From Setoptus koraiensis (Eukaryota; Animalia; Arthropoda): DNA of 64,000 bases. The stretch lies in contig CM106585.1 of assembly GCA_048013815.1 (NCBI GenBank), positions 5,022,001-5,086,000 on the forward strand. The letters run 5' to 3'. The translations under genes were made by a program, and so were the position numbers. Within the stretch, counting starts at the first letter, position 1. Each line of letters begins with the position of its first letter. Positions 791 to 46,060 of this stretch are shown one piece after another. Below the pieces are notes generated by a model, which made no database searches, was not told where the DNA came from, and was given only the letters and a program-made list of their open reading frames with translations.

Positions 791-831
791 CGGAAATGAT
801 GAGAAATGGTGCGTTGGGAGCGAGCACTTAC

Positions 832-9310: not shown

Positions 9311-9574
9311 TAGCTCAATAGTGGCGGACAGTGGTCGACGGTGGCGCGCACTGCCGGCTCGCACGGTGCGCCTCGCATCAGCAAACAACCAAACAACAAA
9401 TAACAACTCTCCACTAATTAGTTTTCGTGGTATTTATAACTTGCCAGCGCGCACTCGCCAGCTAGCACAAACAACCACAATTAATTGTTGTTAACGGCCG
9501 CTCGCTAACTGCGGCCCACTTGCGGTTTAATTGTCATTGGATAGCGAATAGTTGGCGAAATTCTAAATACTCAC

Positions 9575-9643
9575 ATTCACTTCCACCTCCACGGGCAGTT
9601 GTATGAGCGACAGGGTATGCAGCGAGCTGTAGGGCGCGTGGGC
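9575..9643 (-). CDS. Gustatory-receptor-like gene, exon 2 (AHAPYSSLHTLSLIQLPVEVEVN)
   Basis: CCCAG acceptor and AAT|GTGAGT donor, 69 nt, phase 0/0; the AHxPYxxLH motif follows TM6 in arachnid GR-like proteins. Confidence 0.8.
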
Positions 9644-16533: not shown

Positions 16534-16593
16534 GTCATTTCGGCCGTCATTTCGGCCGTCATTTCGGCCGTCATTTCGGCCGTCATTTCGGCC
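16534..16593. repeat. 12-nt tandem repeat GTCATTTCGGCC, 5 copies
   Basis: Directly visible. Confidence 0.92.
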
Positions 16594-18644: not shown

Positions 18645-18716
18645 CGGTCGAAATTCGCTGTCCAGTCGAAATTCGCTGTCCAGTCGGGATTCGCTGTCCA
18701 GTCGGGATTCGCTGCC
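18645..18716. repeat. 18-nt tandem repeat CCAGTCG(AA/GG)ATTCGCTGT, about 4 copies
   Basis: Directly visible. Confidence 0.85.
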
Positions 18717-21700
18717 AAAATGAACACAAGTCAGGCGGGTTCACCTGTGAGAGCGCAAGTCGAGTGGCCGCCCACTGGTTCCGCCGCAGCACCGATCATA
18801 TATCACGGGCAGCGCACAGTTGTGTCTATTCGTCAAGTTCGTTCAATCGTCTGCTCGTGCAAAACGCCGCCGCTGGCCACTTGATGATTTCGATGAAATT
18901 CGATATGCGAATAGTGGGCGCAATTGTGTTTCGCGTTCGAATTTTGTCGAGTAATATTCGACGTTCGAATATTCGACGAATATGCACACTTCGAACGCGA
19001 GAACGCGAAAATATTCGCGTCCAAGTCATCGTGTAAAAGTGTGCGAATATTCAAATGGAGGGCATGTAAGACATGCCTCATAATGTTGTTCTCTTGTACT
19101 TGTGATAATGTTCTCGCGATCGCAAGAACACACGAGCGCTCGTGCCCAGCAGACGGCCGACGAGTATGATATTCGCCTCATCGTTGCCAAGTGGAGCTCA
19201 TTAATTGTTTAAACCAGAAATCAGAAACGAGAAACGAGCAGCAGTGTAAAAGTCAACACTTATCACGGCCGTCGACTGTTGCTCATGTTGCTCGCTGTTA
19301 TTTCTGGCTGACCGACGCGACTCACCAGCCGTCGCTCGTGCCCCCCGATGCACATCTCATATGCATCGCATGTACGCATCCCTCTGGAGCCCGCAACAAT
19401 CAACGGGTGGTCACCAATGCGCCACTAATCTGCCGCCGCAAGTCACCTTGATTTAATGCATGTTAAATCAACCGCTCACTGCAGCGCCGAACTCGAACCG
19501 TGGGTGCACGCCACCCAAATCAGATCCGAGTCAGACCCGAATCAGACCCGAATCAGACCGAAACCGGAGCGAGCAACAACAACAACAACACGTCGCAATT
19601 GTGTTGTGGCGCCACCGATCGCCCCATGTATGCAAACACTGTGACTGGCGATGTTTCCATTGGGGCCTGACGCTGAGCAGCCGACACCGGACAACCGACA
19701 CCGCACAACTGACAACTGACACTGGTCAGCTGACGCCGACAACTGGCACTGGACAACTGACATCGGACAACTGACATCGGACAACTGACAGGACGAGCGC
19801 GCGCTTTGTCGCGATCGCAACTGAGGTTGCGGGCCGAAATTGCGGCCCGATTGAGAGATTTATTGTCGTGTGTTGTTTTGTGCGATAGAGTCAAGTCAAA
19901 TCAGATCAGATCAAGCTGAGCCAAACGAAACCAGGTCACACCGATCATTGTTGTTTGTTAATGAAGTCAGTGGGCAAAGTTGTCGCTGTCGATGGGCCCA
20001 TCGACAGCGACAAACACACAAAAGCGTTAAATAATAGACTCTTCAAACACTTCAAATGATGCGCTTAATGTCTCGGTAGCACCCATTTGAGCAAACAACA
20101 AATGCAACCTATTTTATCCGCTGACAATCTTGTATCTTGTCATGTTGGTCGTTTGTGTTGGTGCTGCTGTCGTGGTTGCTGTGGTCACTCGTAAATGGAG
20201 CCCATTGTTTGTTAATGAGTGCCGGATTCCTGCCACGGCCACAACACCGACAACAACACCGACAACAACGCCGACAACAACATCGCCGCTTGTGCGCCAA
20301 ATTAAGGGTGTTCCAATGTCCACCAATGGTCGCTGTTGGTCATCATTTATCTTGTCACGTTGGCAACATTCAATGGCATGTTGCAACAGCAACAACAACA
20401 GCAACAGCAACAACAACGACGGCAACGATACCACAGGATACGCCAATGCCCCTCGTGTTATTATTCGCTTCTTCGGACGATCATGATTTTTCATTTTATA
20501 CCAAATAAACCGAATAAATAAACAGTCTGCAAATAATATCATCTGATATAGATATTTACTACTTCCTCGATATATCAGTGACAAGTAGGTAAACAAACAC
20601 ACTTTGGCATTGTGTCGCTGAATTCCGGCATTTGCATTTCGCAAACTCTTCAACTCGAGAGGCGATTTCTCTCGCTCGCAGCTCGCTTCCATTCGAGCTT
20701 CCACGGACAAAACAAATAATCAACGGACGACACTCATGTGTCGAAGCTGAATATATCCGCCGATATATTCAGCTTCGATATATATATTCGCTTTATAGTG
20801 TCTGTCACCAGAGAAACAGAAACGTTTCGTTTCGTTTTTAGCTCATTCATTGATGCTTTCATAATACACAATAATACACAATTATAATATGCGCGTGGCG
20901 CAGCTTCAAACTGCACTATGCAAACAACGACCTCAAATGATTAAACTATTTGGTTATCTGCTGATTATTTGATCAACATTGAATATATCCAATTATGTGC
21001 GCGCGCCGGTGCCAGCAAAATAGTATTGATTACACACTATTTTGCCTGCGAATCGAGTCAATCGAGCTCCAAGAAACGCACCGAGAGTTTGAAATAACTC
21101 TCGAGCAAACAATAACTGCTTGATGGCTGCAATTGGTTAACTTCATTCTGGGTGCCTCTATTTCAACCTTCATAGCTGCAACGAAATTTTGATGGACAGC
21201 GGCTAGAAATTGTTGAAATGCTGCTTTTATTATTATATTATGATGCAGCAGTGAACGGAGCCGTCGATGAAAGAAGCAGCAAAGAATTTGATTGATGCAT
21301 TCTAATCGCGCATCAGGTCGCTAAATAAACATCAAAATAGTTAGCTATTCTAATTAGATTTCTTCTTTATTTTTCAAGCGGTCCTCCGCGCCCGTACACG
21401 ACGCGCTGCCCGACAACAATAAATATGGTCCACAATCTGGTTCAATTATAACTGGTAATAGTTAAGTGGGTGGCCTCTCGCTATTGTGTTCGCAAGTTGG
21501 CACAATGGCAACACTCGAACTCGCTTTCCATTCGAAACTAATTTGAATATATGCACATTATTGTATGTATTATTCAGCAATCATGAATGTAACACTGCCA
21601 TAATCTGTGCTCTATGACCATGTTGCCATTATTTCAGTGCCAGGTATCCACGCTCAAACACTCGGTGTGGTTTGGGCCGAAAAAAGAAGAAGAATAACCT

Positions 21701-26811: not shown

Positions 26812-29718
26812 TCTGATGAGTTCGTCAAAGATATAAACATCATGCACAAGCTCTATGATTCAAACCTTATCTAGTATCACGGTGCGGCAATGCTAGTCAC
26901 AGGATCATGGTTATTGTTACCTTTTAGAAATTTATGTGACAAATTCCTCTGGTACGGGATACCTAGAGACAAAACAACTAGTCCACCGATATCCCACAGA
27001 ATATAAACGAAGAATATATTTATTAGCTCTAATGAGTGAATTAAATTAAATTGGCGATTTCGGCCTGATGAGAGCATCACCACAGCACATTGAGCATGCT
27101 TAACTTTCTTCTAACTTTGAGATTATCAGATTATTCATTCCGTAGAACCGAATTCAACGTTTTGTGAGGAGCATCAGAAAGCTATCATATCTATGAGTCC
27201 TTTTGTATAAGGAAGCGGTGTGAGGGATTTTGTCCAGCTGTTATGGGTGAGGAGATAAGCAGATTGAGATTAAATTCACTATCGATCCGGGAAACAGTCG
27301 ACTGCTTCACAGTACACAACCTCGACGTGCTAGATCTAGACAAAGTTGTATTCTGATCTGTGATTAATGGCGATATGTCAGGGATATTTTGGAGAAATTC
27401 GAACAGATCTCAGGTGAGTAGGGTTGTTAATTTCCGTTTCTGAGGCATGGTTTGTTGGGTTGGTTAGTTACTTGTTGGTTTTCCGGTTGGTCCGGTTGCT
27501 TCGTCAGTCAGTTATCTGATACAACATATACAGGCGGATGCATTGTTTGAACACGGCTTTGCCGAGATTTCGCACCGTCGGGATAGCGTACTTTCGAGAT
27601 CCCAAGCGTCTAGATTGTGTACTGCCGAGATTTTGTAAGTCGAGATATCGACCCAAACCAATCGATGTGTGGATCAAGGTCTGCAGATAGAAATCGACGA
27701 TCAATTTTGACGAGCCGAATATACTTACGTGTCAGAGTCAGGATTGTATGTAAATAGTTGCGAATAGTGAGTTCCTCGCTTGCTAGCAACGACAATTGCG
27801 TGAAGCATACCATTTAAAGGGGCCAGAGCGCCGATGTGAGAACCATTTTTGAATGAAAAAGATGATATTGATGTCCAAGTGTTCGTACATGGATCGTACC
27901 TTTCTCCGATAAAATCAGTGGCACGCGCATCTTTAGATGTGCCTATAACGTAGATGTGTCCTTGTGATACTGAGACTTTCATAGAAGTCGTCAAATTTTG
28001 GCATGACCTATGTTCCAGCGTTTGCCATAGATCAAGGGAAGGATCATAGCGCTCGACAGTTATTGTGGTATAAAGTTTTTTTCCCGTTTTGTCGAGATCT
28101 GGGACTATTCCTACGCAGTAGATGTGATTGTCCAAGCTAATCAATCGTATGCTCCATGGTGCAGTTGACATAGCTCTACAATGAGTCCACTCTTCATCCA
28201 AGAAAGAATATTTAAGCATTATACTGTCGGTCTCCCAATTTTCTTCAGGGGTGCCGTAGAAATACAGCGAACCTAGGTGAAAGACCAAACTACAAACATT
28301 TGTATACTTGTCGTCACATACAGGAGGTGGTGGTTCTGCATAATTGTAGCTTGTTTCAGGGTGGTATATTCTGAAGAGATTACAATCTTTATCGAAGATG
28401 TAAACTACATCACGTCCGGGCACAATAATTGAATTGGATCCCATCTCTTCTGCTATCGGCTGTCTTACTTCTTTCCAATCATTTGTGGTGGCATTGTATT
28501 TATGGACGCGAACGGATTCGTAATGAGTGAACAGGTACAATGCGACATCCCGGCATCGCTCTGAGGACTGTACTGTAGCCGATTGTTCGGTAGTGCTAGT
28601 TTGTTTGTTGACGAGCAATTCAATCATAGCATGTCTAATATACTCACGACATCGTTTGTCATTGTCAATCAACGGATCATTGGCAATGTCGGCAAGATAA
28701 TTCGGCTCTATTTGAGAAAAACGAACATGTTCCAACAAATCAGGAAGTAGCCCCCGACGATCGATGGCAGAATCTTGTTCAGCTTGACGGCACCATCTCA
28801 TGACAGCCTCGTATACAGTTGCTGCTGTTGATCTCAAATTGTCACATTTGATGATTTCAATCAATTGACGAAACTCCAAAGTCAGAAAATCGTCTCGTTT
28901 GGCAACATCGTCGAAGTTCTCCACAATGAATTCCTTTGTTGATTTTGACAATTCCTCAGACGGAAACCTTTCAGCAATATTCAGCAAGATGATGCAATTC
29001 GAGCCATTCAAAATTTGCTTCGCATCGAGTTGACGTAGTCGCTGAGCAATATCCTGGCGAGATCTCTCCCAATCGACGAGAATGGAACTTTGCGTGTCAG
29101 AATTTTTGTGCTGTCCGAGCTTTATTTTCTTTGTTGCCAGTCCATTCAAACTTGTTTTGAATTGTTCGTCTGTTTCACTCTGAAACAAACGCTTTCTTAT
29201 ATTAGATATGACGTCGATTTCCAAATCCGAAGGATCTTCTTTTTTCACTGTCACTGGCAATTCAACTGTTGCGCCCAAAATTTCCTGGGCCATCTTGCTT
29301 ATCATTGGTTTATCAGAATACCTGACAAGTAAATCGATTGCTTGAGCTTTGGCGATAGCCAGTTTTTCTTCTTTTATATTTTTCTTGATTATTAATGAGC
29401 CGTTGAGATTCTCAAATAAATATGAGGACCACTCGGCGGCTATCTTAAATATGTAGTCGATTTCGGGATTCGCCATAGTTTCGAATCTCACCTAATTATG
29501 TTAATTATGTGTAATTGTGTGTAAAGTATGGAATGCGTTTCAGCTATGTAGCATAAGTTTGAGACGCATATATATATATATATGCGTCATAATATATATA
29601 TATTATATACATATATACATGTAATATAATATGACGGAGACAGCTGGATGGTTTGCAGTTAGTGTTGCGGAGCGAACGCTCGCTCCGAGCTGCGCAGTTT
29701 CACTCCGCAGCACTATTT
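26812..29718 (-). repeat. Left arm of a ~2.9-kb inverted segmental duplication
   Basis: Reverse complement matches 32996-35800, from TCTGATGAGTTCGTCAAAG at 26812 to CACTATTT at 29718. Confidence 0.92.
27725..29476 (-). CDS. BACK-Kelch protein lacking a recognisable BTB domain, copy A
   Basis: BACK motifs (NCIILLNIAERF, FIVENFDDV, FLTL, VYEAVMRW, LLEHVRF) and Kelch repeats (VERYDPSLDLW, GERYDPCTNTW, LNGMLHAI). First ATG is 29476 (the track start 29491 is GTG). The stop lies inside AC|GTAAGT, so a small 3' intron is possible. Confidence 0.85.
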   Translation of the reverse strand: MANPEIDYIFKIAAEWSSYLFENLNGSLIIKKNIKEEKLAIAKAQAIDLLVRYSDKPMISKMAQEILGATVELPVTVKKEDPSDLEIDVISNIRKRLFQSETDEQFKTSLNGLATKKIKLGQHKNSDTQSSILVDWERSRQDIAQRLRQLDAKQILNGSNCIILLNIAERFPSEELSKSTKEFIVENFDDVAKRDDFLTLEFRQLIEIIKCDNLRSTAATVYEAVMRWCRQAEQDSAIDRRGLLPDLLEHVRFSQIEPNYLADIANDPLIDNDKRCREYIRHAMIELLVNKQTSTTEQSATVQSSERCRDVALYLFTHYESVRVHKYNATTNDWKEVRQPIAEEMGSNSIIVPGRDVVYIFDKDCNLFRIYHPETSYNYAEPPPPVCDDKYTNVCSLVFHLGSLYFYGTPEENWETDSIMLKYSFLDEEWTHCRAMSTAPWSIRLISLDNHIYCVGIVPDLDKTGKKLYTTITVERYDPSLDLWQTLEHRSCQNLTTSMKVSVSQGHIYVIGTSKDARATDFIGERYDPCTNTWTSISSFSFKNGSHIGALAPLNGMLHAIVVASKRGTHYSQLFTYNPDSDT

Positions 29719-32998: not shown

Positions 32999-35800
32999 TA
33001 GTGTTGCAATAGTGCAACTGCGCCGCACGGAGCGAGCGTTCGCTCCGCAACACTAACTGCAAACCATCCAGCTGTCTCCGTCATATTATATTATATAATA
33101 TATATATATTATATAATGCGTCTCAAACTCATGCTACATAGCTGGAACGTATGCTACTTTACACACAATGACACATAATTATATGAGATTCGAAACTATG
33201 GCGAGTTCCGAAATCGACTACATATTAAGGATAGGCGAAGAGTGGTCCTCAATCAAGAAAAATATAAAAGAAGGAAATCTGGCTATCGCCAAAGCTCAAG
33301 CAATCGATTTACTTGTCAGGTATCCTGATAAACAAATGATAAGCAGGATGGCCCAGGAAATTTTGGGCGCAACAGTTGAATTGCCAGTGACAGTGAAATT
33401 TCAGAGTGAAATAGACGAACAAGTTAAAACAAGTTTGAATGGACTGGCAACAGAGAAAATAAAGCTCGGACAGCACAAAAATTCTGACACGCTAAGCTCT
33501 ATTCTCGTCGATTGGGAGAGATCTCGCCAGGATATTGCACAGCGACTACGTCAACTCGATGCGAAGCAAATTTTGAATGGCTCTAATTGCATCATCTTGC
33601 TGAATATTGCTGAAAGGTTTCCGTCTGAGGAATTGTCAAAATCAACAAAGGAATTCATTGTGGAGAACTTCGACGATGTTGCCAAACGAGACGATTTTCT
33701 GACTTTGGAGTTTCGTCAATTGATTGAAATCATCAAATGTGACAATTTGAGATCAACTGCACCAACTGTATACGAGGCCGTCATGAGATGGTGCCGTCAA
33801 GCCGACCAAGATTTTGCAATCAATCGTCGGGGGCTACTTCCTGATTTGTTGGAACATGTTCGTTTTTCTCAAATGGAGCCGAATTATCTTGCCAACATTG
33901 CCAATGATCCGTTGATTGACGATGACAAACGATGTCGTGAGTATGTTAGACATGCTATGATTGAATTGCTCGTTAACAAACAAACTAGCACTACCGAACA
34001 ATCGGCTACAGTACAGTCCTCAGAGCGATGCCGGGATGTCACATTGTACCTGTTCACTTATTACCTATCCGCTAGCGTCCATAAATACAATGCCACCACA
34101 AATGATTGGGAGGAAGTAAGACAGCCGATAGCAGAAGAGATGGGACCCCATTCAATTATTGTGCCCGGACGTGATGCAGTTTATATCGTCGATAGAAAGT
34201 GTAATCTCGTCAGAATCTACCACCCTGAAACAAGCTACAATTATGCAGAACCACCACCTCCTGCATGTGACGACAAGTATGCATATGTTTGTAGTTTGGT
34301 CTTTCACCTAGGTTCGCTGTATTCCTACGGCTACCCTAAAACAAATTGCCAGAAGGACAGTACAATGCTTAAATATTCTTTCTCGGATGAAAGGTGGACT
34401 CATTGTAGAGCTATGTCAACTGCACCATTGAGCATGCAATTGATTAGCTTGGACAATCACATCTACTGCGTAGGAATAGTCTCAGATCTCGACAAAACGG
34501 GAAAATTTTATGCCACAATAACTGTCGAGCGCTATGATCCTTCCCTTGATCTATGGCAAACGCTGGAACATAGGCCATGGCAAAATTCGACGATTTCTAT
34601 GAAAGTTTCAGTATCACAAGGACACATCTACGTTATAGGCACATCTAAAGATGTGCCTATAACGTTTATAAATCAGTGGCAGCTTACGCATGCCACTAAA
34701 TTTATCGGAGAAAGGTACGATCCGTGTACGAACACTTGGACATCAATATCGTCTTTTTCATTCGAACATGTTAATGCTCGCATCGGCGCTCTGGCCCCTT
34801 TAAATGGTATGCTTCACGCAATTGTCGTTGCTAGCAAGCGAGGAACTGACTATTCGCAACTATTCACATACAATCCTGACTCTGACACGTAAGTATATTC
34901 GGCTCGTCAAAATTGATCGTCGATTTCTATCTGCAGACCTTGATCCACACATCGATTGGTTTGGGTCGATATCTCGACTTACAAAATCTCGGCAGTACAC
35001 AATCTAGACGCTTGAGATCTCGAAAGTACGCTATCCCGACGGTGCGAAATCTCGGCAAAGCTGTGTTCAAACAATGCATCCGCCTGTATATGTTGTATCA
35101 GATAACTGACTGACGAAGCAACCGGACCAACCGGAAAACCAACAAGTAACTAACCAACCCAACAAACCATGCCTCAGAAACGGAAATCAACAACCCTACT
35201 CACCCGAGATCTGTTCGAATTTCTCCCAAATTTCCCTGACATATCGCCATTAATCACAGATCAGAATACAACCTTGTCTAGATCTAGCACGTCGAGGTTG
35301 TGTACTGTAGAGCAGTCGACTGTTTCCCGGATCAATAGTGAATTTAATCTCAATCTGCTTCTCTCCTCACCCATAACAGCTGGACAAAATCCCTCATACC
35401 GCTTCCTCATACAAAAGGACTCATAGATATGATAGCTTTCTGATGCTCCTTACAAAACGTTGAAATCGGTTATACGGAATGAATAATCTGATAATCTCAA
35501 AGTTAGAAGAAAGTTAAGCATGCTCAATGTGCTGTGGTGATGCTCTCATCAGGCCGAAATCGCCAATTCAGTTCACTCATTAGAGCTAATAAATATATTC
35601 TTCGTTTATATTCTGTGGGATATCAGTAGACTAGTTGTTTTGTCTCTAGGTATCCCTTACCAGAGGAATTTGTCACATAAATTTCTAAAAGGTAACAATA
35701 ACCATGATCCTGTGACTAGCATTACCGCACCGTGATACTAGATAAGGTTTGAATCATAGAGCTTGTGCATGATGTTTATATCTTTGACGAACTCATCAGA
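32996..35800 (+). repeat. Right arm of the inverted segmental duplication
   Basis: Matches 26812-29718 inverted, including the Kelch gene and about 0.9 kb of downstream sequence. Confidence 0.92.
33168..34892 (+). CDS. BACK-Kelch protein lacking a recognisable BTB domain, copy B
   Basis: Inverted paralog of 27725-29476; intact ORF with in-frame indels; the ATG shared with copy A is at 33198. Confidence 0.85.
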   Translation: MTHNYMRFETMASSEIDYILRIGEEWSSIKKNIKEGNLAIAKAQAIDLLVRYPDKQMISRMAQEILGATVELPVTVKFQSEIDEQVKTSLNGLATEKIKLGQHKNSDTLSSILVDWERSRQDIAQRLRQLDAKQILNGSNCIILLNIAERFPSEELSKSTKEFIVENFDDVAKRDDFLTLEFRQLIEIIKCDNLRSTAPTVYEAVMRWCRQADQDFAINRRGLLPDLLEHVRFSQMEPNYLANIANDPLIDDDKRCREYVRHAMIELLVNKQTSTTEQSATVQSSERCRDVTLYLFTYYLSASVHKYNATTNDWEEVRQPIAEEMGPHSIIVPGRDAVYIVDRKCNLVRIYHPETSYNYAEPPPPACDDKYAYVCSLVFHLGSLYSYGYPKTNCQKDSTMLKYSFSDERWTHCRAMSTAPLSMQLISLDNHIYCVGIVSDLDKTGKFYATITVERYDPSLDLWQTLEHRPWQNSTISMKVSVSQGHIYVIGTSKDVPITFINQWQLTHATKFIGERYDPCTNTWTSISSFSFEHVNARIGALAPLNGMLHAIVVASKRGTDYSQLFTYNPDSDT

Positions 35801-35930
35801 CTGTCCAATGTGAAGCCGACAGCGATGCTGGCGAAAGACTTTTTAGCTGCTGTTACAGCACGATAAATCTCATCACTGGGATATGAGTGAATTTCATCGC
35901 AGACAGTTCTTCCCGTTCGTGGACAGTCTT
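35799..35930 (-). pseudogene. ~130-bp duplicated fragment of the Spaetzle-like gene
   Basis: Matches 43417-43548 with about 5 substitutions by eye. Confidence 0.9.
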
Positions 35931-36151
35931 GATTTTGATCGGAGAGTGTGTGAGTGTGTCAAGTAGTGCTGAGGGCAACTATGGGCGGTGGGGCATGCCC
36001 GTGTGCGGCACAGGGGCAGTGGGCAGCATAGGGGCAGCAAAGGGGCTATTTAAAAAAAAATAAAAAAAAAAAATGTAAATAGCCCCTTTGCTGCCCCTAT
36101 GCTGCCCGCTGCCCGCCCGCTGCCCATCTCGCCCAAAAGCTGCCCGCAAAA
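35929..36151. repeat. G-rich direct repeat, copy 2, extending into a foldback palindrome (39-bp arms 36014-36052 and 36076-36114, A-rich loop)
   Basis: GGGCAGTGGGCAGCATAGGGGCAGCAAAGGGGCTATTTA pairs with TAAATAGCCCCTTTGCTGCCCCTATGCTGCCCGCTGCCC with one G-T mismatch; imperfect symmetry continues outward. Confidence 0.88.
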
Positions 36152-36326
36152 TGTTGAAATAATGTTCAGCACATTCGACTCACTCAAATTATCTGATCTG
36201 TGCACGACAACTGTGCCGTGCACATCTGATCATGTTCACGCGCATCTTACTGTGCAAGACTATAAATATAACCAACATTCAATAATAAACTAGCTTTTGC
36301 TAAACATTCAAATACAAGTTTCAATA
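36152..36326 (+). repeat. 5' LTR (TGTTG...CAATA)
   Basis: Identical to 42741-42915; contains a TATAAATA box and an AATAAA signal. Confidence 0.95.
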
Positions 36327-36340
36327 GGTTAACAGCCAAA
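36327..36340 (+). promoter_or_regulatory. Primer-binding site complementary to the tRNA-Asn(GTT) anticodon arm
   Basis: GGTTAACAGCC(AAA) directly after the LTR is the reverse complement of GGCTGTTAACC, the anticodon stem-loop of eukaryotic tRNA-Asn. Confidence 0.75.
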
Positions 36341-36403
36341 AATATAAAACCTTGTATTTAAAAGTAAAAGTTACAACAAGAAAACAAATCATCAACAAAC
36401 ACA

Positions 36404-39400
36404 ATGTTTCATGAAGATGGTATGCCGGTCGTTGTTGCTGGGAATGGTCCCACGCATCAGAGTCACTCATATAAAGGACACAGCATGCAAGTAATACGAC
36501 TAAATGGTAAAAACTATTCCACATGGAAATTTGTTATTAAGAAGATGGTTACTCAACGAAAATTAGCTGGTGTAGTCTTCGAACAACCAGATACATCTTT
36601 ATCAGAAGAAGAAATCTCAAATAAAGATTACCAAGCTTGGGAGCTTATAACCTCATCGTTGGAGCAACATGTCCTAGAGAAAGTGGTAGTATGTGAAACG
36701 GCCAGAGACATTTGGGACAGATTGAAGAGAGTCTACGAGTTGGAGGGTGACGCCAACTTGAACTCGAATTTCGTAGCATTTTGCACCATGAGCATGACCC
36801 AGTCAGAAGAGATGTCTTCTTACATTGGGAAATTGGACATGCTCGTCGACAAGATCAAAAATCAGGGTGAAACATTAAGTGAAAAATTAATCCAAGCCAA
36901 ATTAGTAAGCAGCCTTACACCAGAATACGACGTTTTCCGTCAGGTATGGGACGCTACTCCAATCAAGACATACAAAATACTAGTTGATCGACTCAGCCAA
37001 GAAGAATCTAATCTAAAAGCGCGTCGACAATCAGATTTGCATGCAACAACATCAGCCTTATACACAAAGAACAATAACAATGATAGAAAGCCAAAGAAAT
37101 TCGGAGATAAAAGCAGTAGAGGCGAAATCTCGAAGAAAGAGAGTAAATGCCATTATTGTGGCAAAACTGGCCATTGGACATCGGATTGCTTCAAAAAGAA
37201 AGCAGACGAATCAAAAAGCAAAGAATCATCAACGTTCAAGCGTCCACCAAAGTATAGAGACGACTCAGACAGTAAGAATATTGCATTCATGGCTAGAACA
37301 ACAAACATCAATTCCAATGAAGGAATGAAATGGTACATCGATAGTGGCGCATCTAGCCACATGTGTAATGACAAGAACTCGTTCGAGTCTCTTGAATTTT
37401 TCGACATTCCGATACGGATTTTAGTAGGTAATGATGACTACATAGAAGCACATGGGAGAGGAACCATACCTTTCCATGCCTCCAATGAAGAAAACCTCAA
37501 ATGCTCACTACGACAAGTTCTGTTCGTACCAAAGATCACCGAAAACCTTATATCCGTTGGTGCTGCGGCTGATAACGGGGTTATAACCCTCTTTTACCCA
37601 CACAAATGCGTCTTGTTCTGCAATGATCAGGACAAGACAATCATAGCATACGGCTCGAGAATCAAATCTAGCGGTCTGTATCTGCTGGACCAACAAGCAC
37701 CTTGCAGAGCCTTGTACAGCAAGGTCAAACGAACATTGTCCCAATGGCATCCGGCCCTTGGACATGTCAACCATGATAGGATAAAAAGATTAGCAGGATC
37801 AAACCTTGTTGATGGTTTTGAATTAGTTGAGGAGAGAAAGCCAGCAGTATGTTCTGCATGCCCAGCAGGCAAGGCACCACGCGTCTCTCACCCCAGCTCT
37901 TCCAGAGAGAAGGCCAAAAGGGTTGGAGAGATAGTTCACCTAGACTTGATAGGTAAATTGCCTGATAGCCTAGGAGGCAGCAAATATCTTCTCGTGCTTG
38001 TCGATGAGGCCAGCAATTACATCACAGTTTATCCCCTAAAATCAAAGGATTTAGTTTATGAGAATCTGCAGGATTACTTTGCCATGGTCGAAAGTCAAAC
38101 CGGCAACAGAGTGAAAACGTTATGGTCCGACTGTGGATCGGAATTCATTAACCAACACGTTAAAACCCTGCTAGCAATTGAACACGCGACGATAATAACA
38201 AGTTCACCCAGGACGCCACAACAAAATGGCAAAGCGGAGCGAACTAACAGATCGATCATAGAATCCGCAAGAACAATGCGACTAGACTCCGGATTAGCTG
38301 AGCCATTATGGGCAGAAGCGTGCTGCACTGCGGCATACATCCTAAATCGCGTATCACTTGCACATGCGAAAGAGGTCACCCCATTCGAAATGTGGTTTTC
38401 AAGAAAACCTAGCCTATCTCACTTGAGAACTTTTGGCGAACCGATACAAATCCTCGATAAGGCAAGAACCGGTTCAAAATGGTCAACAAAAACCAAAAAC
38501 GCTTATTTGGTCGGATACACACAAAGATCCAACACATATCGTTGCTACGTACCAGAGGATAAAATGGTACAAATAACGAGCGACGCTATCTTTCGTCCAC
38601 ATCACCATTCACTCAACAACAATACAGATGATGATTATAACAATGCAGAGACTAGCGTTTCATTGCAAAGTCCACCAACGGATGAACATGGTACAGACAG
38701 AGGTCATCTAAACAATAACACCTCTGCACCTGAAACAATAATTGAGACTCTACAAAATGACACGAGCATTCCAACAGATAGTATTCCTGGTGCCGAGTTT
38801 GATGATAGCACAATAACAAACGCAAACAATGTCACCGTGCGCGAGGTCATGACCTATCGCGAGAATACAGATAATCCATCTGATAATTTCCAATCGACGC
38901 CTAAACAGATATTCACTATAGGCAAAACTGGCATATTAAACAAACCAACGACTCTCGCTGGGTACGTTGGATTGATAGCTAGAGCCGAGCCGCTAACGTA
39001 CAAACAAGCAATGAAAAATGACGATGCGAGCCTGTGGAAAGATGCTATTAAAGATGAGATATCATCTATGGCCAAAAACAAAGTCTGGTCATTTGCAAAC
39101 TTACCAAAGGGAGCGAAAGCAATCACCGCTAAATGGGTATTCCGGATTAAGTCCCTACCCACAGGCGAAGTAGACAAGTACAAGGCTCGCCTCGTCGCCA
39201 GGGGCTTTAACCAAAGACCTGGCCAAGATTATGTAGAAACATTTGCACCAGTAGTGAGACACGAGTCTATAAGACTCTTGTTTGCATTAGCAGCTAAGTA
39301 TCGAATGGAAATAATGCAATTCGATATAACTACTGCATTCCTCAACGGTACGCTTAAGGAGGAACTCTACATGGTTCCACCCGAAGGGCTAGAAAACAAA

Positions 39401-42400
39401 GACAACCAAGTTCTACGTCTACACAAAGCAATATACGGGCTTAAACAAAGTTCACGTTGCTGGTGTGAAAGTTTTACAAATATATTGAAAAATTGCGGCT
39501 TAACACCACTAGTATCTGACTCATGCATCTTCAAAGGCGAAGTAATTGGCGAAATGGTCTATCTAGGGATATACGTGGATGATGGCCTGGCCATATCAAA
39601 GTCGAGAAAGGCATTGGCACATCTGTTATCATCCTTAAACAAACACTTGAATCTCAAGGAAGTACAAACAAACATGTTTGTTGGTTTTGAGTTCAAAAGA
39701 GATGATAAGACAGGAAACATCCTTCTACATCAAAATGCCTATATCAACAAAATGTTAATCGCCTACAACATGAGTGAGTGTGCAACTGTAAAATCACCGA
39801 TGGCTGATGTGAAGAGTCTGATAAACAACAAAGATGCCTCGGTAAGCGTTCCATATCGAGAGCTGGTTGGCAGCCTGCTGTACGCAGCTTGCGCGACACG
39901 CCCTGATATAGCATTCAGCGTGAACACGCTCGCCAAGTTTAATGCAGCACCACAGGACATACACTGGGCTGCAGCTAAACGCGTGCTCCGATATCTGAAG
40001 GGCACAATAAACAGTGGGATTATCATGTTCGCTGAAAATGAAATGAAGGTCAACTGCTATACAGACGCAGACTGGGCAGGCGATGAAGAGACAAGCAAAT
40101 CCACAAGTGGAATTGCAGTATATATAGGCAAATCCCTTATTTGCTTTTCGAGCAAGAAACAGCAAACAGTAGCACTGAGCACAGCTCAGGCCGAATATCA
40201 TGCAGCAAGCTATGGAGTCATGGACCTCATATGGCTAAACACATTTCTCCACGAGCTTCAAATAGAACAATCAAAATGTGCCTTATTCATTGACAACCAA
40301 TCCACAATCGCTATGATTAAAAATCCAGTTCACCACACAAAAACACGACACATCGATATCAAACTACATCACGTGAGAGATCACTTTAAAGACGATCTCT
40401 TTGACATTAACTACGTAGACACTAATAACCAAAAGGCTGACATTCTAACCAAATGCCTAGCACCAAAAGTACACCAGGCAAATGTTAAAACAATGGGATT
40501 ATCCAACGGATTAATGACTTGCTTCGCACTAATGACAATCCTATCAACTGTCATGTGCGGGTTCCATGTCGAAGATTTGGTAGTATGGCGTCCGACTGAC
40601 ATAAAACATATAAGCGGACAGTCAGAAATAGACTTTATCCTAGGATTCCAAAACCCATGCAGTGCCATATTTGGAAATTTAACAACGTCACAAGTTTTAA
40701 ACATTAAACTGAAAACTGTTTGCGACAAGCGCTACGCATCAGAAATAGAAGTCAGCCTCGAAGAACTCACAACTCAACTGCAAAGAGTAAAAAGGGAACT
40801 CATCACAGCAGCAGTTCTTACAGTGACTGGCGTTACCGCAATGGTCATGTCAGCAGCAGCTGCAGTAAACAGTAACAACGCGAATAAGAAAGCTAATGTT
40901 CTGAGGGAGATTACAGATGACCTTAACTCACGGATCAGCTCAAATCAGGAGAAAATCATCATAGCGAATCAAAGAATCAATAAGAAGATAGCTGATATAG
41001 ACGACAGTATAGACATTCTGACCGAGGCATTGAAGTCTCAACCCGAAATCAATGATGTTTTGATCAAAACAATCTTCGATATATTAGAATCAAAGCGAAA
41101 AATCAAGCAACTCAAAGAAAGCCTCAAAGTTGGTTCACAAGCCCCACCGATGATAATTGATATGTTCAATTTGAAAGAGTATGCGTCTGTTACCACTTTG
41201 AGACACTCAACAGTGAAAGAACTAAAATACAACGATGGAGAGCTACAGCTTAAACTCAAAATATTGATGGCCAGCCCAGACATAGAAGTTTATAAAGCTG
41301 ACCCATTCAGTTACGAAGAAATGGACGGTAGAAGAACATGCGTATACAAATACACCGGACCAGCATACACAATGCATAACACAACAAACGACTGCATCCG
41401 ACAAGTATCAGCTGCAGAAGTAGATGTCGACACACTGTTTGGGGAAGGATGCACACAAAGAGAACCCATACATGACAAGCTTTACTATCACAAGACGCTT
41501 TGTCAAGGAGTGAACAAATATAACGTCGCTGCACCAATTGTCCAATACAAGCATGACAGTAAAGTATTGAAAATCAACTGCCAGGGCCATAAAATAATGT
41601 TGGGAGACACAGAACAAGACTGTCCTCCTTATGTATTTTCCGTGGAAGAAAACATTAGCTACAAAATCGACGGGACCACATTCTACAACGAAAATCTGAA
41701 TTTCTCACGTAATGCCATAGAGTACGAGATTCCATCAAAAATTAACTTACACCATAGGACATCAAGAAAGAAATTCGAATCCATGAGCGCTTCTGATATC
41801 ACCGATTTAAAGGCTGAGAAAAGTCAAGGCAAATACAAACATTTGAGCGACGAGTATGACAATATTGGCGATTCAATTAATATCATCAGTGCTCTAATAG
41901 GATACTTACACTTATCCGTTTTAACCACTGGTGCCTACATAGCGTATGGAGTCGGCATTGTATTCGCATGCCTTTACCTGAAAGCTCGACGCAACAGAAA
42001 ACGACAGAAAGTACCGGTAGCAGTAGCTGTCGCACTTCTGTCAATGGGAATGGTGACCGCAGACAGTTTTGATCACACATATTTCACACACACTTCAACA
42101 ATCCAAGAGGCCAACACCATGATTCAGGATTTACAACGTACTATGATCACAAGCAAATGCAATCCATGGAGCATGAACGAAAGCCACCAATTATGGAAGT
42201 CACGAGAAGGCAACTACCCTGTTAGCGTGTCCTGCTCATTAGCAAACACAAAGATTGACTGCCCATGCGAGCCACGCGACACATATGTGCCCATCGTCAG
42301 TGCGAATGAATTAAGAACAATTAAAGGATTCACAACTTTCGATTGCGAGCGTGCATTCCCATCCGGACAGGCCTACCATTACAGAACCGTAAAGGAGAGA

Positions 42401-42718
42401 GAGAAATACAAAATCCTTGAAAAATACCTCTGTGATACGGCCCCTGCGGAATATTGGAAGGAGGAAAGCATTAACGATTATGGCCAACTAGTGGCCTCTG
42501 CATGCCAATTAGCAAGGATGGCGTTAAATTGCCATTGCCCTTGCATACATGACTTCAGACCCCTCTATCGAGACCGTCTAAGTCTAGAGGCAACAAATCA
42601 AATCGTGACCGATATGGAAAGCAGATCGACAAAATGTCAAACTGCAAAAAGCAAGATTGCTCATGAAACAGAAATTCAAAAGAAATCAGTACGTTCGAGA
42701 CTAGAGTTGAGCGAGTAG
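36404..42718 (+). CDS. Gag-Pol-Env polyprotein, 2104 aa, single frame
   Basis: Gag LNGKNYSTW and CCHC knuckle CHYCGKTGHWTSDC (~37148); protease WYIDSGASSHM (37331); WHPALGH...CSAC; integrase HLDL, SDCGSEF, GKAERTNR; RT YKARLVARGF, LHKAIYGLKQS, YVDD (39572); RNase H YTDADWAGD, DNQS, QKADILTK; then about 740 further aa. Confidence 0.96.
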   Translation: MFHEDGMPVVVAGNGPTHQSHSYKGHSMQVIRLNGKNYSTWKFVIKKMVTQRKLAGVVFEQPDTSLSEEEISNKDYQAWELITSSLEQHVLEKVVVCETARDIWDRLKRVYELEGDANLNSNFVAFCTMSMTQSEEMSSYIGKLDMLVDKIKNQGETLSEKLIQAKLVSSLTPEYDVFRQVWDATPIKTYKILVDRLSQEESNLKARRQSDLHATTSALYTKNNNNDRKPKKFGDKSSRGEISKKESKCHYCGKTGHWTSDCFKKKADESKSKESSTFKRPPKYRDDSDSKNIAFMARTTNINSNEGMKWYIDSGASSHMCNDKNSFESLEFFDIPIRILVGNDDYIEAHGRGTIPFHASNEENLKCSLRQVLFVPKITENLISVGAAADNGVITLFYPHKCVLFCNDQDKTIIAYGSRIKSSGLYLLDQQAPCRALYSKVKRTLSQWHPALGHVNHDRIKRLAGSNLVDGFELVEERKPAVCSACPAGKAPRVSHPSSSREKAKRVGEIVHLDLIGKLPDSLGGSKYLLVLVDEASNYITVYPLKSKDLVYENLQDYFAMVESQTGNRVKTLWSDCGSEFINQHVKTLLAIEHATIITSSPRTPQQNGKAERTNRSIIESARTMRLDSGLAEPLWAEACCTAAYILNRVSLAHAKEVTPFEMWFSRKPSLSHLRTFGEPIQILDKARTGSKWSTKTKNAYLVGYTQRSNTYRCYVPEDKMVQITSDAIFRPHHHSLNNNTDDDYNNAETSVSLQSPPTDEHGTDRGHLNNNTSAPETIIETLQNDTSIPTDSIPGAEFDDSTITNANNVTVREVMTYRENTDNPSDNFQSTPKQIFTIGKTGILNKPTTLAGYVGLIARAEPLTYKQAMKNDDASLWKDAIKDEISSMAKNKVWSFANLPKGAKAITAKWVFRIKSLPTGEVDKYKARLVARGFNQRPGQDYVETFAPVVRHESIRLLFALAAKYRMEIMQFDITTAFLNGTLKEELYMVPPEGLENKDNQVLRLHKAIYGLKQSSRCWCESFTNILKNCGLTPLVSDSCIFKGEVIGEMVYLGIYVDDGLAISKSRKALAHLLSSLNKHLNLKEVQTNMFVGFEFKRDDKTGNILLHQNAYINKMLIAYNMSECATVKSPMADVKSLINNKDASVSVPYRELVGSLLYAACATRPDIAFSVNTLAKFNAAPQDIHWAAAKRVLRYLKGTINSGIIMFAENEMKVNCYTDADWAGDEETSKSTSGIAVYIGKSLICFSSKKQQTVALSTAQAEYHAASYGVMDLIWLNTFLHELQIEQSKCALFIDNQSTIAMIKNPVHHTKTRHIDIKLHHVRDHFKDDLFDINYVDTNNQKADILTKCLAPKVHQANVKTMGLSNGLMTCFALMTILSTVMCGFHVEDLVVWRPTDIKHISGQSEIDFILGFQNPCSAIFGNLTTSQVLNIKLKTVCDKRYASEIEVSLEELTTQLQRVKRELITAAVLTVTGVTAMVMSAAAAVNSNNANKKANVLREITDDLNSRISSNQEKIIIANQRINKKIADIDDSIDILTEALKSQPEINDVLIKTIFDILESKRKIKQLKESLKVGSQAPPMIIDMFNLKEYASVTTLRHSTVKELKYNDGELQLKLKILMASPDIEVYKADPFSYEEMDGRRTCVYKYTGPAYTMHNTTNDCIRQVSAAEVDVDTLFGEGCTQREPIHDKLYYHKTLCQGVNKYNVAAPIVQYKHDSKVLKINCQGHKIMLGDTEQDCPPYVFSVEENISYKIDGTTFYNENLNFSRNAIEYEIPSKINLHHRTSRKKFESMSASDITDLKAEKSQGKYKHLSDEYDNIGDSINIISALIGYLHLSVLTTGAYIAYGVGIVFACLYLKARRNRKRQKVPVAVAVALLSMGMVTADSFDHTYFTHTSTIQEANTMIQDLQRTMITSKCNPWSMNESHQLWKSREGNYPVSVSCSLANTKIDCPCEPRDTYVPIVSANELRTIKGFTTFDCERAFPSGQAYHYRTVKEREKYKILEKYLCDTAPAEYWKEESINDYGQLVASACQLARMALNCHCPCIHDFRPLYRDRLSLEATNQIVTDMESRSTKCQTAKSKIAHETEIQKKSVRSRLELSE
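40493..42010 (+). CDS. Env-like class I (F-type) fusion glycoprotein domain within the polyprotein
   Basis: Signal-like MGLSNGLMTCFALMTILSTVMCG; furin RVKR (40784-40795); hydrophobic ELITAAVLTVTGVTAMVMSAAAAV; long heptad-like helix; sequons NLT, NTT, NIS, NFS; 8 ectodomain Cys; TM 41882-41980; basic tail KARRNRKRQK. Confidence 0.8.
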
Positions 42719-42727
42719 AATGCACCG

Positions 42728-42740
42728 AAAATGGGGGGAG
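42728..42740 (+). promoter_or_regulatory. Polypurine tract
   Basis: AAAATGGGGGGAG immediately before the 3' LTR. Confidence 0.85.
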
Positions 42741-42915
42741 TGTTGAAATAATGTTCAGCACATTCGACTCACTCAAATTATCTGATCTGTGCACGACAAC
42801 TGTGCCGTGCACATCTGATCATGTTCACGCGCATCTTACTGTGCAAGACTATAAATATAACCAACATTCAATAATAAACTAGCTTTTGCTAAACATTCAA
42901 ATACAAGTTTCAATA
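42741..42915 (+). repeat. 3' LTR
   Basis: Identical to the 5' LTR; ends exactly at the gap. Confidence 0.95.
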
Positions 42916-43416
42916 NNNNNNNNNNNNNNNNNNNNNNNNNNNNNNNNNNNNNNNNNNNNNNNNNNNNNNNNNNNNNNNNNNNNNNNNNNNNNNNNNNNNN
43001 NNNNNNNNNNNNNNNNNNNNNNNNNNNNNNNNNNNNNNNNNNNNNNNNNNNNNNNNNNNNNNNNNNNNNNNNNNNNNNNNNNNNNNNNNNNNNNNNNNNN
43101 NNNNNNNNNNNNNNNNNNNNNNNNNNNNNNNNNNNNNNNNNNNNNNNNNNNNNNNNNNNNNNNNNNNNNNNNNNNNNNNNNNNNNNNNNNNNNNNNNNNN
43201 NNNNNNNNNNNNNNNNNNNNNNNNNNNNNNNNNNNNNNNNNNNNNNNNNNNNNNNNNNNNNNNNNNNNNNNNNNNNNNNNNNNNNNNNNNNNNNNNNNNN
43301 NNNNNNNNNNNNNNNNNNNNNNNNNNNNNNNNNNNNNNNNNNNNNNNNNNNNNNNNNNNNNNNNNNNNNNNNNNNNNNNNNNNNNNNNNNNNNNNNNNNN
43401 NNNNNNNNNNNNNNNA
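42916..43416. other. Assembly gap (501 N)
   Basis: Run of N; the track ORFs 42836-44338 and 42886-43431 cross it artefactually. Confidence 1.
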
Positions 43417-44017
43417 GACTGTCCAATGTGAAGCCGACAGCGATGCTTGTGAAAGACTTTTTAGCTGCTGTTACAGCACGATAAATCTCATCACTGGGAT
43501 ATGAGTGAATTTGATCACAGACAGTTCTTCCCATTCGTGGACAGTCTTTATTTTGTTTGGGTTTGAAAATCTTTCTTTCAGATGTTATTGGAGCACTTGG
43601 AATTATTGGCTGACCAACAATTAGTATAGTGTCGGGCTCTGGCTCAGCCTCATAAGTTGGCTTGGAGTAAAAAGGATTGTTCATCAATGAAGGAATAGCT
43701 TGTTGTTTGTATCGTCTATGATTATGTTGTTGCTTGAGATTGTCATCAATTAAAGTTCGTAACGGACTCGAATAATTGATGAAAGGACTGATGTTAACCC
43801 TTGATTTTTGTTGTTCATTTAAGCTGTTCGTCGTTGAACAATCAGGGCAATCTTTATTGATATAATCACTATTATTTGGAGGAGCAACTCTTCGATGGTT
43901 GTTGTTATGATGTGCCGATGATGGATGTATAAAAGTCTGATGACCCATGACTATGTTATTGACGGGACTAAGTGTTTCAGCCGACGAATAGATGACTATA
44001 GTAGAAAAAATTAACAT
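43417..44017 (-). CDS. Spaetzle/neurotrophin-family precursor, N-terminal part (cystine knot lost in the gap)
   Basis: Signal peptide MLIFSTIVIYSSA at ATG 44017 (frame open upstream to 44338); pro-domain motif CPRMGRTVCDQIHSYPSDEI resembles the Spz-family C-x-x-G-x-T-x-C-x-x-x-x-x-YP motif. The cystine knot is not visible. Confidence 0.65.
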
Positions 44018-44962
44018 CGTGATTACGGAGGAGATTTTTCTAGTGAAAAACAATTTCTTATTAACACTATTATGTGATGACGACGGTGATATTCTTTTGC
44101 AAATCGATTCGATCAATTGAGATAGCTCGCTAGTGTCGCCGAGTGAAATTACAACACGAGAAAGTTCTCTTAAAGCTTGTCGATTATTATATTGAACATT
44201 GGATAGTGATGACATGGTCATAAATTGCGTCTTCTTCTTATGATTTTCAGATATTGTTGACATTTTTCTTATAGAAGTAATTGATATAATAGATCCATAG
44301 TAATGATATCCACCTGATGCTTCTTTTAATTTTTCCATTGGAAAACTTTCGTTTGGTGCATCATCATCATCTCCACATCGTCATTGTCAACACATTCAAG
44401 AAATCGTTCTTAAGGTGGACACATTATATCTCAGGGTATCATAGAAAGGAATGGATTGTTTGTGCAAAGTGTTGACCATTACAAGTGTTTGTTGAGTTTT
44501 TGTTGTCGCCACAAAACTAAAGAAAAGAGACTAATTTTGAGTCTAATTACAACTAAATATTGCCCTCGCAATCAAGACAAGAGTACATTTTATATTTCTA
44601 AATGGTAAAACCATGCTTAACTAATCAAAGTGATAAGTCACGCAGCCAAACGCAACACCAGGCGAGCATTTTGAATTTAAACTTGTTAGCCAAGTATATT
44701 GATAGAAACAACAACAAGACAAACAACGACTTGAACAGTCATCAACAATTCTGTTAGTTAGAGTGAGGAGTCAGGCGATGGCGAGCTAATCGATGACGCC
44801 AGTTTGGATGATGATGAATTGAATCGTGTGATAGTGGACACCAAATTAATAATAACAGATCGTTTTAAAACACAATAGAACTAAAGAATCGGATCAAGAA
44901 TCTGCACTTGCATCTACAATCATTACAGAAAAATTTATTATCACCGTTATTATTTTATATGT

Positions 44963-46060
44963 ACATGCCAGTCGATCTAAATCAACTTATCCAACCAAGC
45001 TCTCGTCTGTTTGTATTTAGTTGTCACAACCGAGGTAAATGCTTCTGCTACGGCTAGCTGTTAGCCTGTTTGCTGTCCAGATATTCCAAATTGACAGTAT
45101 CACCTAATCTCTCTAGGACCTTGATATTATCATTCGGAGCTGCGACTTTTATGAATGTTTCGAACGGAATATCTTTGCTCAAATTCTTTGCGTACTCCAT
45201 ATCGGTGTGTTCATTCGCGACTGCCACCGGAACACGCACGACATGTTTGTGGCCGCTTTGAGCATAGCCCCTCAGAGCGAGCTCTATCTGTGGTCCTTGC
45301 CAAGCTACAGGTCCTACTTTTGATTGCCACACAAGGCTATAAGGATATTTCCGTTTCAGTCTGTGAATTATCGCTTGAACAGTTGCACCAACTTCACCGG
45401 TATAATCGTCACCCCTTTCTACCATCCAAATGGGTATAGAATAGGCGCTGAATAGGATGATAATTTGATCCCTGATCTCGTCCGTCAGATTTGCCATTTC
45501 TTTTTCGATTCTCTCGGCAAAAACATCAACTATAGCGTCAGCTACGGGCCATCTATCAATAAGAGACCATCTCTGAGTGGGTACGTCATTTCGAGGAATG
45601 TCTTTCTCTATACAATATCGAGCTATTTCATTTAAGCTGCTGCCTGTGGTGCTGCAACTGTATTGGGGATATTTAGATAAAAGAACAACATTTTCTACTT
45701 TATCTTGTTCCAAGCTTGCTACGGCACACTCAATATCTGGACGCGAGTAACGAAAACAGGTGTAGGCTTTGTGTGGACCAGTCGATGGACTTATTTTGTC
45801 TAAATGTTCTACCAGACCTTTACCTTGCTTTTCAGTCCATTCTTTCAGAGGGTCTCCTCCAATTTCATCGAATTTGGCCTTTAACTTGGGTGCTCTAAAC
45901 TTGGAGATCAATGGACCAAGCATTGACTGCATAGGCATCTTTATTATGTCTCTATCATTAAAAAAACTTTCTGACATCATCAACGTGTTCCGACTCTGGC
46001 CCACCCATGTTTAGCATGAGTACTGCAGTTTTTATTTTCGGAGAGTTGCCATTGTCATTG
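44963..46060 (-). pseudogene. Ferrochelatase pseudogene (duplicate of 61769-62986)
   Basis: No transit peptide; 11-nt frameshifting deletion near 45965; catalytic His changed (FSAH to FSAY); IETLHEL with the catalytic Glu deleted; premature stop before the Fe-S cysteines. Confidence 0.9.

Follow-up and report, generated by a model that had tools for sequence, protein, structure and literature searches.

A probable envelope-bearing Ty1/copia element in the genome of Setoptus koraiensis, with a paramyxovirus F-type module in frame with Pol

Can a Ty1/copia retrotransposon carry an envelope gene of viral type? In the International Committee on Taxonomy of Viruses (ICTV) profile (PMC8515867), the family to which such elements belong, Pseudoviridae, is described without an extracellular phase; the question is raised by a locus of the arthropod Setoptus koraiensis, lying in a stretch of 64,000 nucleotides (GenBank assembly GCA_048013815.1, contig CM106585.1, positions 5,022,001 to 5,086,000; hereafter the window, to whose numbering all positions of the element and its surroundings refer), in which a single open reading frame (ORF), bracketed by long terminal repeats (LTRs), continues well beyond the point where Pol ends. 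A first-pass annotation, made from the letters of the sequence and without database searches, had taken this ORF for a copia Pol fused to an envelope protein. On the evidence presented below, the locus is likely to hold an envelope-bearing Ty1/copia (Pseudoviridae-type) element, in which Gag, protease (PR), integrase (IN), reverse transcriptase (RT) and RNase H run without a stop into a fusion glycoprotein (Env) of the paramyxovirus F type; the coordinates of the features are collected in Table 1.

Copia backbone and the frame beyond Pol

According to the ORF listing and to the translation of the window, the ORF spans 2104 codons on the plus strand and contains no internal stop. Over its first 1134 residues the Pfam matches follow the order Gag-PR-IN-RT, the RT match being to RVT_2, and an RNase H motif comes afterwards, at residue 1221; the DSGAS, YVDD and DADWAG motifs are intact, and the integrase rve match, at 30.4 bits, falls slightly below the Pfam cut-off of 32.6. 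Since the order PR-IN-RT and the RVT_2 match indicate a Ty1/copia backbone, and since all the Pol and Gag tests carried out on the sequence give this answer, the element is, on sequence criteria, a member of Ty1/copia, as the first-pass annotation had proposed from the domain order PR-IN-RT-RNase H. An errantivirus would be recognized by a Pol of the Ty3/gypsy type, with the order RT-RNase H-IN (RT-RH-IN) and RVT_1; Pfam finds RVT_2 here, and the integrase ahead of the RT. Pol is closed by an ADILTK-type motif, a few residues after which copia ORFs usually stop; in the window the frame stays open for 741 residues, in agreement with the earlier estimate of about 740, and 741 stop-free codons would be vanishingly unlikely to occur by chance at a GC content of about 41%.

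The ORF is bracketed by two direct repeats of 175 nt each, which are 100% identical. The true 3' end of the 5' LTR probably lies within 36320-36340, a block of 21 nt which is identical in the related locus L001, whose proteins share only about 45% identity; such conservation with respect to a diverged relative marks the block as the LTR-end/primer-binding region, and no tRNA gene with which a primer-binding site could be compared is present in the 64-kb window. The base composition is even from gag through pol to env (GC 0.40-0.43, AT skew 0.20-0.25). Apparently, the element is a young and complete endogenous copy; its earlier description as intact is correct as far as the unbroken ORF and the identical LTR pair are concerned, but does not extend to the 3' LTR, which is cut by an assembly gap of 500 N, absent from the first-pass account.

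Fold and anatomy of the envelope module

Searched as a single sequence, the env part is without a match in Pfam or among the PDB sequences. A family profile, built from 57 relatives and searched against the PDB sequences, matches mostly F0 of paramyxo- and pneumoviruses (best match Langya virus F, E 3.5e-5), the alignment between profile and F0 falling at the cleavage site, the fusion peptide and the heptad repeat A (HRA) of henipavirus F; two of the relatives touch the Pfam family Fusion_gly, and the Baculo_F profile neither matches the window protein nor appears among the top Pfam families of the 57 relatives. The AlphaFold model of the monomer, obtained from the alignment of the 57 relatives, has a mean pLDDT of 75, with values above 90 across most of the ectodomain; when it is compared with the PDB by Foldseek, the top 50 matches are all F glycoproteins of paramyxo- and pneumoviruses, postfusion forms coming first. 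The best match is the F protein of human parainfluenza virus 3 (hPIV3; 1ztm), with an E-value of 2.2e-10 and a probability of 1.00; the F proteins of Langya virus, Newcastle disease virus and respiratory syncytial virus are also among the top matches, whose alignments extend over about 417-480 columns. By its modelled fold and by the profile, the C-terminal extension is supported as a class I, F-type fusogen, which is the architecture put forward in the first-pass annotation; two outcomes that would have spoken against that proposal, namely a model devoid of a fusogen fold and best matches to a host membrane protein, were not encountered, the monomer model having the F fold and no such host protein being matched.

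The anatomy of the module, from the signal-like segment through to the basic tail, likewise stands as first described, and is recovered by hydropathy, motif scan and structural model. By hydropathy, a hydrophobic segment covers residues 1366-1386, close to the beginning of the module; the furin-type RVKR occupies residues 1461-1464 (nt 40784-40795), the a/d positions of the heptad helix are hydrophobic in 76% of the cases, as compared to 41% overall, the six cysteines of the head span residues 1646-1740, and five N-x-S/T sequons are found in the env module. Conservation was assessed by column in the alignment of the 57 relatives: at the cleavage site, Arg is retained at P1 in 50 of 51 rows and at P4 in 42 of 51, Lys or Arg at P2 in 39 of 51, and 87% of the rows have a hydrophobic segment right behind the cut; the two Cys columns of the F2-like segment are kept in 44/46 and 49/50 rows, and the eight Cys columns of the ectodomain are 93-100% kept.

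Past the transmembrane (TM) anchor and its basic tail, the window protein carries a second signal-like segment and a Cys-rich C-terminal domain of 218 residues, neither of which figured in the first-pass annotation. The model of this domain is mostly helical (pLDDT 73); it contains 11 Cys, ten of which are in common with the closest relative of the env part (P0001, see below). It is found in 25 representative proteins, every one of them in the subclade of the window element, and is preceded by the TM segment, the basic tail and the second hydrophobic segment wherever the subclade sequences cover them; identity over the second signal-like segment and the domain is 21-33% among relatives, with the Cys columns kept. 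The domain has no match in Pfam, among PDB sequences, among PDB folds (best E 1.6) or in BFVD (best E 1.7); some rows pointing to four-helix cytokines were discarded as noise (probability at most 0.07).

Relatives and the Pol-Env junction

The first-pass annotation had also suggested looking for further copies and relatives of the element. A HMMER scan (phmmer) of 1.84 billion representative proteins returned 243 relatives of the env part at E<=1e-3, 25 of them at E<=1e-30. The closest one, P0001, shares 45% identity across all 741 residues; its source is a 6.7-kb Logan contig, which is a collapsed LTR element, and the protein starts inside RNase H and then continues in frame into env. In at least ten representatives, which derive from assemblies in Logan, ENA and NCBI, a complete copia Gag-Pol-Env is encoded by a single ORF of 1875-2187 aa, and the precomputed Pfam matches are copia-type; in 39 of the best 150 of the 243 relatives, one ORF joins a copia RNase H end to the F part, as a rule with only 3-40 residues between the two. 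Pattern scans of the JGI metagenome and IMG/VR contigs gave no relatives, and a word-indexed search for full-length fusions with residues 1364-2104 found none; exact look-ups of three proteins of the window returned no entry.

What lies upstream of env was counted in the 79 representatives whose match covers the env N-terminus. In 37 of them the same ORF contains a copia RNase H end; in another 18 it contains at least 150 aa which are not copia RNase H, and the members of this group checked in Pfam have a Ty3/gypsy Pol (RVT_1, Integrase_H2C2); 40-149 residues without a copia RNase H match are found in 5 cases, while in the remaining 19 there are fewer than 40 residues, env being in an ORF of its own or the contig being cut. 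Same-frame continuity into env is present in at least 60 of the 79 representatives, far above the third that would be expected were the frame irrelevant; as read from these sequences, one env family rides on two LTR superfamilies and is commonly fused to Pol. In five proteins (P0107, P0046, P0087, P0060 and P0027), one ORF combines a Ty3/gypsy Gag-Pol (RVT_1, RT_RNaseH, Integrase_H2C2, Integrase_p58_C) with a member of the same F-type env family, so that Pol-Env fusion is not peculiar to copia. In a rough neighbour-joining (NJ) tree of the ectodomains, whose branches are too long for env swaps to be counted, one gypsy-linked pair adjoins the copia subclade of the window; the sequences hint at an exchange of modules between copia- and gypsy-linked env.

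The distribution of the junction also bears on the possibility that Pol and Env were joined only by an error of assembly or scaffolding, a copia element having been merged with an unrelated env sequence. That the local assembly is imperfect is indicated by the 500-N gap, which abuts the 3' LTR, and by a sequence of 140 nt present twice, once ahead of the element and once behind the gap (35798-35937 recurs at 43416-43555, directly past the gap, with 95.7% identity); the junction, however, is located 2.4 kb within gap-free sequence of uniform base composition, env lies between the LTRs and right ahead of the polypurine tract, and dozens of diverged relatives, taken from other assemblies, have the same junction. 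With at least 37 diverged representatives from independent assemblies showing the same continuity, the misjoin at the RNase H/env boundary that the first-pass annotation had considered is not borne out, and a chimeric origin is extremely improbable.

A different objection is that the element might be a dead or domesticated relic, its Env being of use to the host or to nothing at all, and having no part in transmission. Within the 64-kb window there is one copy only, and the close relatives L001 and L005 are damaged, the former by two in-frame stops (and no frameshift), the latter by at least one frameshift; the window copy, on the other hand, has all its genes unbroken, identical LTRs, and an env placed inside the LTRs beside the polypurine tract. 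Moreover, the features of env are conserved over hundreds of element-borne copies, a pattern that fits selection acting on the element and not on one host locus, and we regard a relic as improbable.

Some of the relatives deserve a description of their own. The Logan sample SRR33593474 contains at least three diverged members of the env subclade (proteins P0001, P0010 and P0008; loci L001, L004 and L005), two of which are broken, so that several lineages coexist in one host or sample. In the contig of P0004 (Logan SRR18067306), a 2187-aa copia Gag-Pol-Env ORF is followed downstream by a chromodomain ORF of 151 aa (PF00385), which is unusual beside copia; in L003 (ENA ERZ27294290), which belongs to a related element, the leader/LTR region contains a 68-nt unit in three tandem copies, at positions 847-1071 of that locus.

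Expression, known counterparts and genomic setting

In the mechanism that we propose, the full-length genomic RNA would be translated into one Gag-Pol-Env polyprotein; the signal-like peptide just past RNase H would carry the nascent chain into the endoplasmic reticulum (ER), and signal peptidase would part the cytosolic Gag-Pol from the lumenal F0. Cleavage of F0 at RVKR by a furin-type protease would then yield F2 and F1 and uncover the fusion peptide, with F1 anchored by the TM segment. The TM segment, the basic tail and the second signal-like segment would form a hairpin, by which the last 218 residues return to the lumen, and a second cut by signal peptidase would free the disulfide-rich Cys domain as a separate glycoprotein, possibly an accessory or attachment partner of F; budding through the F-bearing membrane would finally provide a cell-to-cell or extracellular route, as in errantiviruses. 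One-polyprotein translation, a fusogenic Env and an infectious element are what we infer; the polyprotein step is proposed because of the in-frame continuity found in the census and because in many relatives the signal-like peptide is not preceded by a Met, which prevents env from starting at that point in them. In flaviviruses (C-prM-E), alphaviruses (E3-E2-6K-E1) and bunyaviruses (GPC), signal peptidase cuts cytosolic and lumenal products from one chain; the comparison with these viral polyproteins, which have internal signal peptides, is one of analogy to the proposed processing only, and not of homology.

Alternatively, Env could be produced from a spliced subgenomic mRNA, in which an upstream start is joined to an acceptor near the end of RNase H, the open frame across the junction being a by-product of compaction. 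Spliced RNAs are used for errantivirus env and for Drosophila copia gag; in the window element a Met is found directly ahead of the signal-like peptide and a GT a few codons inside gag, and the 19 representatives with fewer than 40 residues upstream of env could be read in the same way, though many of them are cut contigs. However, no obvious polypyrimidine/AG acceptor is seen at the junction, either in the window element or in L001; the prevalence of same-frame continuity and the relatives devoid of a Met also argue against splicing, even if both would be compatible with splicing that occurs beside read-through. Splicing as the source of Env is, on balance, unlikely, though far from negligible.

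Besides the splicing alternative, a few points weigh against the reading of the locus as an envelope-bearing copia element encoding an F-type Env. The TM-scores to F structures are low (0.2-0.4), because the model of a monomer is compared with trimers in two conformations, prefusion and postfusion; the 500-N gap conceals the end of the 3' LTR and the target-site duplication, and the 100% identity of the LTRs over 175 nt could be due in part to assembly collapse. As to the processing, the signal-peptidase sites were assigned by eye, following the -1/-3 rule, and the role of the C-terminal domain as an accessory or attachment partner of F is a guess, this domain being without a detectable relative of known function. 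A broader proposal is put forward tentatively, as possible rather than probable: the element would represent a widespread and still active lineage of pseudoviruses with an envelope, living in arthropods and other animals ('copia errantiviruses'), in which Gag, Pol, an F-type fusogen and, in the subclade of the window element, a second and novel glycoprotein are released from one polyprotein by signal peptidase and furin, and which could move between cells or hosts.

The closest counterparts are the Ty3/gypsy elements with an F-type Env (errantiviruses broadly, PMC13524379), in which an F-like Env with furin site, fusion peptide and a head-and-stalk fold is likewise located downstream of pol; the survey of F-type and gB-type env by Chary & Hayashi (eLife 2026, PMC13524379) kept only elements classed as Ty3/gypsy. 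The env described here is homologous to the gypsy-linked F-type Env, gypsy-type Gag-Pol-Env proteins being returned by the same phmmer search; the differences reside in Pol, which is PR-IN-RT-RH with RVT_2 and not RT-RH-IN, in the location of env within the pol ORF, and in the second signal-like peptide and Cys-rich domain which are added in the subclade. The element would work in the manner of an errantivirus, but by its Pol it falls outside that group. With the F proteins of paramyxo- and pneumoviruses it shares the fold and the layout (signal peptide, F2, furin site, fusion peptide, HRA, head, heptad repeat B (HRB), TM segment, short tail), at an identity of only 10-14%; unlike them, it is encoded in a retroelement polyprotein instead of a negative-strand RNA genome, its signal peptide is internal to the ORF and not N-terminal, and it is accompanied by no partner of the HN/H/G type, an unrelated and soluble-looking domain being present in cis instead.

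Canonical animal Ty1/copia elements (ICTV profile, PMC8515867) resemble the window element in the single gag-pol ORF, the domain order, the copia Gag and the short, TG-initiated LTRs; with its F-type fusogen, the latter departs from the family description, but not from the Pol-based definition. Sireviruses, which are plant-specific copia elements with a separate env-like ORF after pol (PMC3599292), are similar in combining membership of the copia superfamily with an extra gene past pol, whereas here the neighbouring genes are those of an arthropod and env is part of the pol ORF; furthermore, the sirevirus env-like ORF is without a known viral fusogen fold. No sirevirus-like proteins are present among the 243 env relatives, a set gathered with no direct test aimed at them. 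Independent capture of a fusogen by an LTR retroelement is also known from the BEL/Pao elements Anakin, with a chuvirus-like glycoprotein, and Atlas, with a phlebovirus-like one (PMC12440569, PMC9094657), which differ from the present case in the Pol superfamily and in the class of fusogen (III and II). Only Errantivirus and Anakin are listed as env captures in an overview of 2025 (PMC12440569), and in a search of the full-text literature, Repbase-type catalogues not included, animal copia elements carrying an F-type env were nowhere found described. Fusogen capture by LTR retroelements being already known, the novelty supported here consists in the copia superfamily, in the single frame with Pol and in the extra glycoprotein domain; apparently, a large env-bearing copia family has not yet been described.

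Table 1. Positions of the element, its parts and selected neighbouring features in the window (aa, residues of the 2104-codon ORF)
Feature	Position (nt)	Strand	Basis or remarks
5' LTR, repeated part	36152-36326	+	100% match to 42741-42915; TGTT start, TATA-like box, AATAAA
Leader with presumed primer-binding site	36327-36403	+	Conserved block in common with L001
Single Gag-Pol-Env ORF, 2104 codons + stop, unbroken	36404-42718	+	ORF listing
Gag: capsid aa 66-207, CCHC knuckle aa 248-263	36404-37273	+	Pfam Retrotran_gag_2, E 7e-22; zf-CCHC
Aspartic protease, aa 310-392, DSGAS	37331-37579	+	Pfam Pol_BBD, E 3e-22; motif
Integrase, aa 424-733	37673-38602	+	Pfam gag_pre-integrs, rve, SH3_retrovirus
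Reverse transcriptase, copia type, aa 892-1134, YVDD	39077-39805	+	RVT_2, E 1.7e-60, full model
RNase H and Pol end, about aa 1190-1363, DADWAG, ADILTK	39971-40492	+	Motifs; aligns to Pol ends of 39 relatives
Internal signal-like peptide 1, aa 1364-1385, Met first, small residues at -1/-3	40493-40558	+	Hydropathy; same place in relatives; predicted helix
F2-like segment, two conserved Cys (1419, 1440), ends in furin-type RVKR	40559-40795	+	Motif scan
Hydrophobic fusion peptide, aa 1465-1489	40796-40870	+	Hydropathy; aligned to henipavirus F fusion peptide
HRA-like heptad helix, aa 1499-1573	40898-41122	+	75-residue helix in model
Beta-rich head, aa 1603-1760, six conserved Cys	41210-41683	+	pLDDT >90; Foldseek alignment to F ectodomains
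Membrane-proximal HRB-like helix, aa 1796-1820	41789-41863	+	Model helix
TM anchor aa 1837-1859, basic tail aa 1860-1869	41912-42010	+	Hydropathy; layout kept in relatives
Second signal-like hydrophobic segment, aa 1870-1886, V-x-A (V-T-A) before presumed cut	42011-42061	+	Hydropathy
Cys-rich, mostly helical domain, aa 1887-2104, no terminal TM segment	42062-42715	+	No family or fold match
Polypurine tract	42728-42740	+	Purine run abutting 5' side of 3' LTR
3' LTR, ended by assembly gap	42741-42915	+	Repeat match to 5' LTR
Scaffold gap of 500 N, outside the element	42916-43415		Sole gap in the window
Ferrochelatase ORFs	45057-46004; 61772-63004	-	Apparently intron-less
BTB-BACK-Kelch ORFs	27728-29491; 33168-34889	-; +	Apparently intron-less

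The neighbouring ORFs are long and intron-poor, and encode two ferrochelatases, two BTB-BACK-Kelch proteins, dyskerin, a homeodomain protein and a short-chain dehydrogenase/reductase (SDR). Ferrochelatase shares 68% identity with its counterpart in Aceria tosichella, an eriophyoid mite, 46-52% with those of insects, spiders and further mites, and 93% with one Logan protein; the neighbouring genes are those of an arthropod, the host group named in the first-pass annotation, with Aceria tosichella as the nearest named species for ferrochelatase, and the host is probably a mite of the eriophyoid type. Two ferrochelatase and two Kelch ORFs, all long and apparently without introns, suggest that this mite genome is streamlined and that genes have been duplicated locally. 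An ORF of 687 aa on the minus strand (10953-13013) gives a sub-threshold match to the insect odorant receptor family 7tm_6 (24.2 bits, against a cut-off of 25.8), an unusual finding in a mite; the protein could be of the gustatory type or an unrelated seven-transmembrane (7TM) protein. An insect host, to which this match would point, is rejected, because the match stays below the gathering threshold and ferrochelatase is closer to Aceria tosichella than to insects. The GC content goes from about 0.50-0.58 (1-20000) to about 0.40-0.43 (20001-46000), the minimum of 0.31 being reached at 42-44 kb, in the bin which holds the 500-N gap.

About 40 nt upstream of the 5' LTR there is a G/C-rich foldback (36014-36114), with arms of 39 nt that are 97% complementary and an A-rich loop of 23 nt; it may be a small insertion, foldback-like or similar to a miniature inverted-repeat transposable element (MITE), in which or beside which the element landed. 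As to the 140-nt repeat, both copies encode the same minus-strand peptide, and the frame remains open solely in the one behind the gap (ORF 43416-44338, 307 aa, without a Pfam family); the repeat may be a true local duplication, or else the scaffold may join an insertion-bearing contig to an empty haplotype, in which case the copia insertion would be polymorphic and may interrupt a host ORF.

Should the broader proposal of an active, enveloped lineage be correct, all three superfamilies of LTR retroelements would include enveloped, virus-like members, by way of exchangeable F-type env modules. A large copia lineage with a homologous F-type fusogen would indicate that the enveloped lifestyle arose, or was exchanged, across LTR superfamilies, and that a group of potential arthropod retroviruses has been overlooked, within retroelements described as strictly intracellular; the presence of Gag, Pol and Env in a single frame would imply an expression strategy based on internal signal peptides, unusual for retroelements, and the Cys-rich domain would be a candidate for a new envelope accessory or attachment protein. 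For the host, a fresh insertion with identical LTRs would be a notable occurrence in the streamlined, intron-poor genome of a mite of the eriophyoid type.

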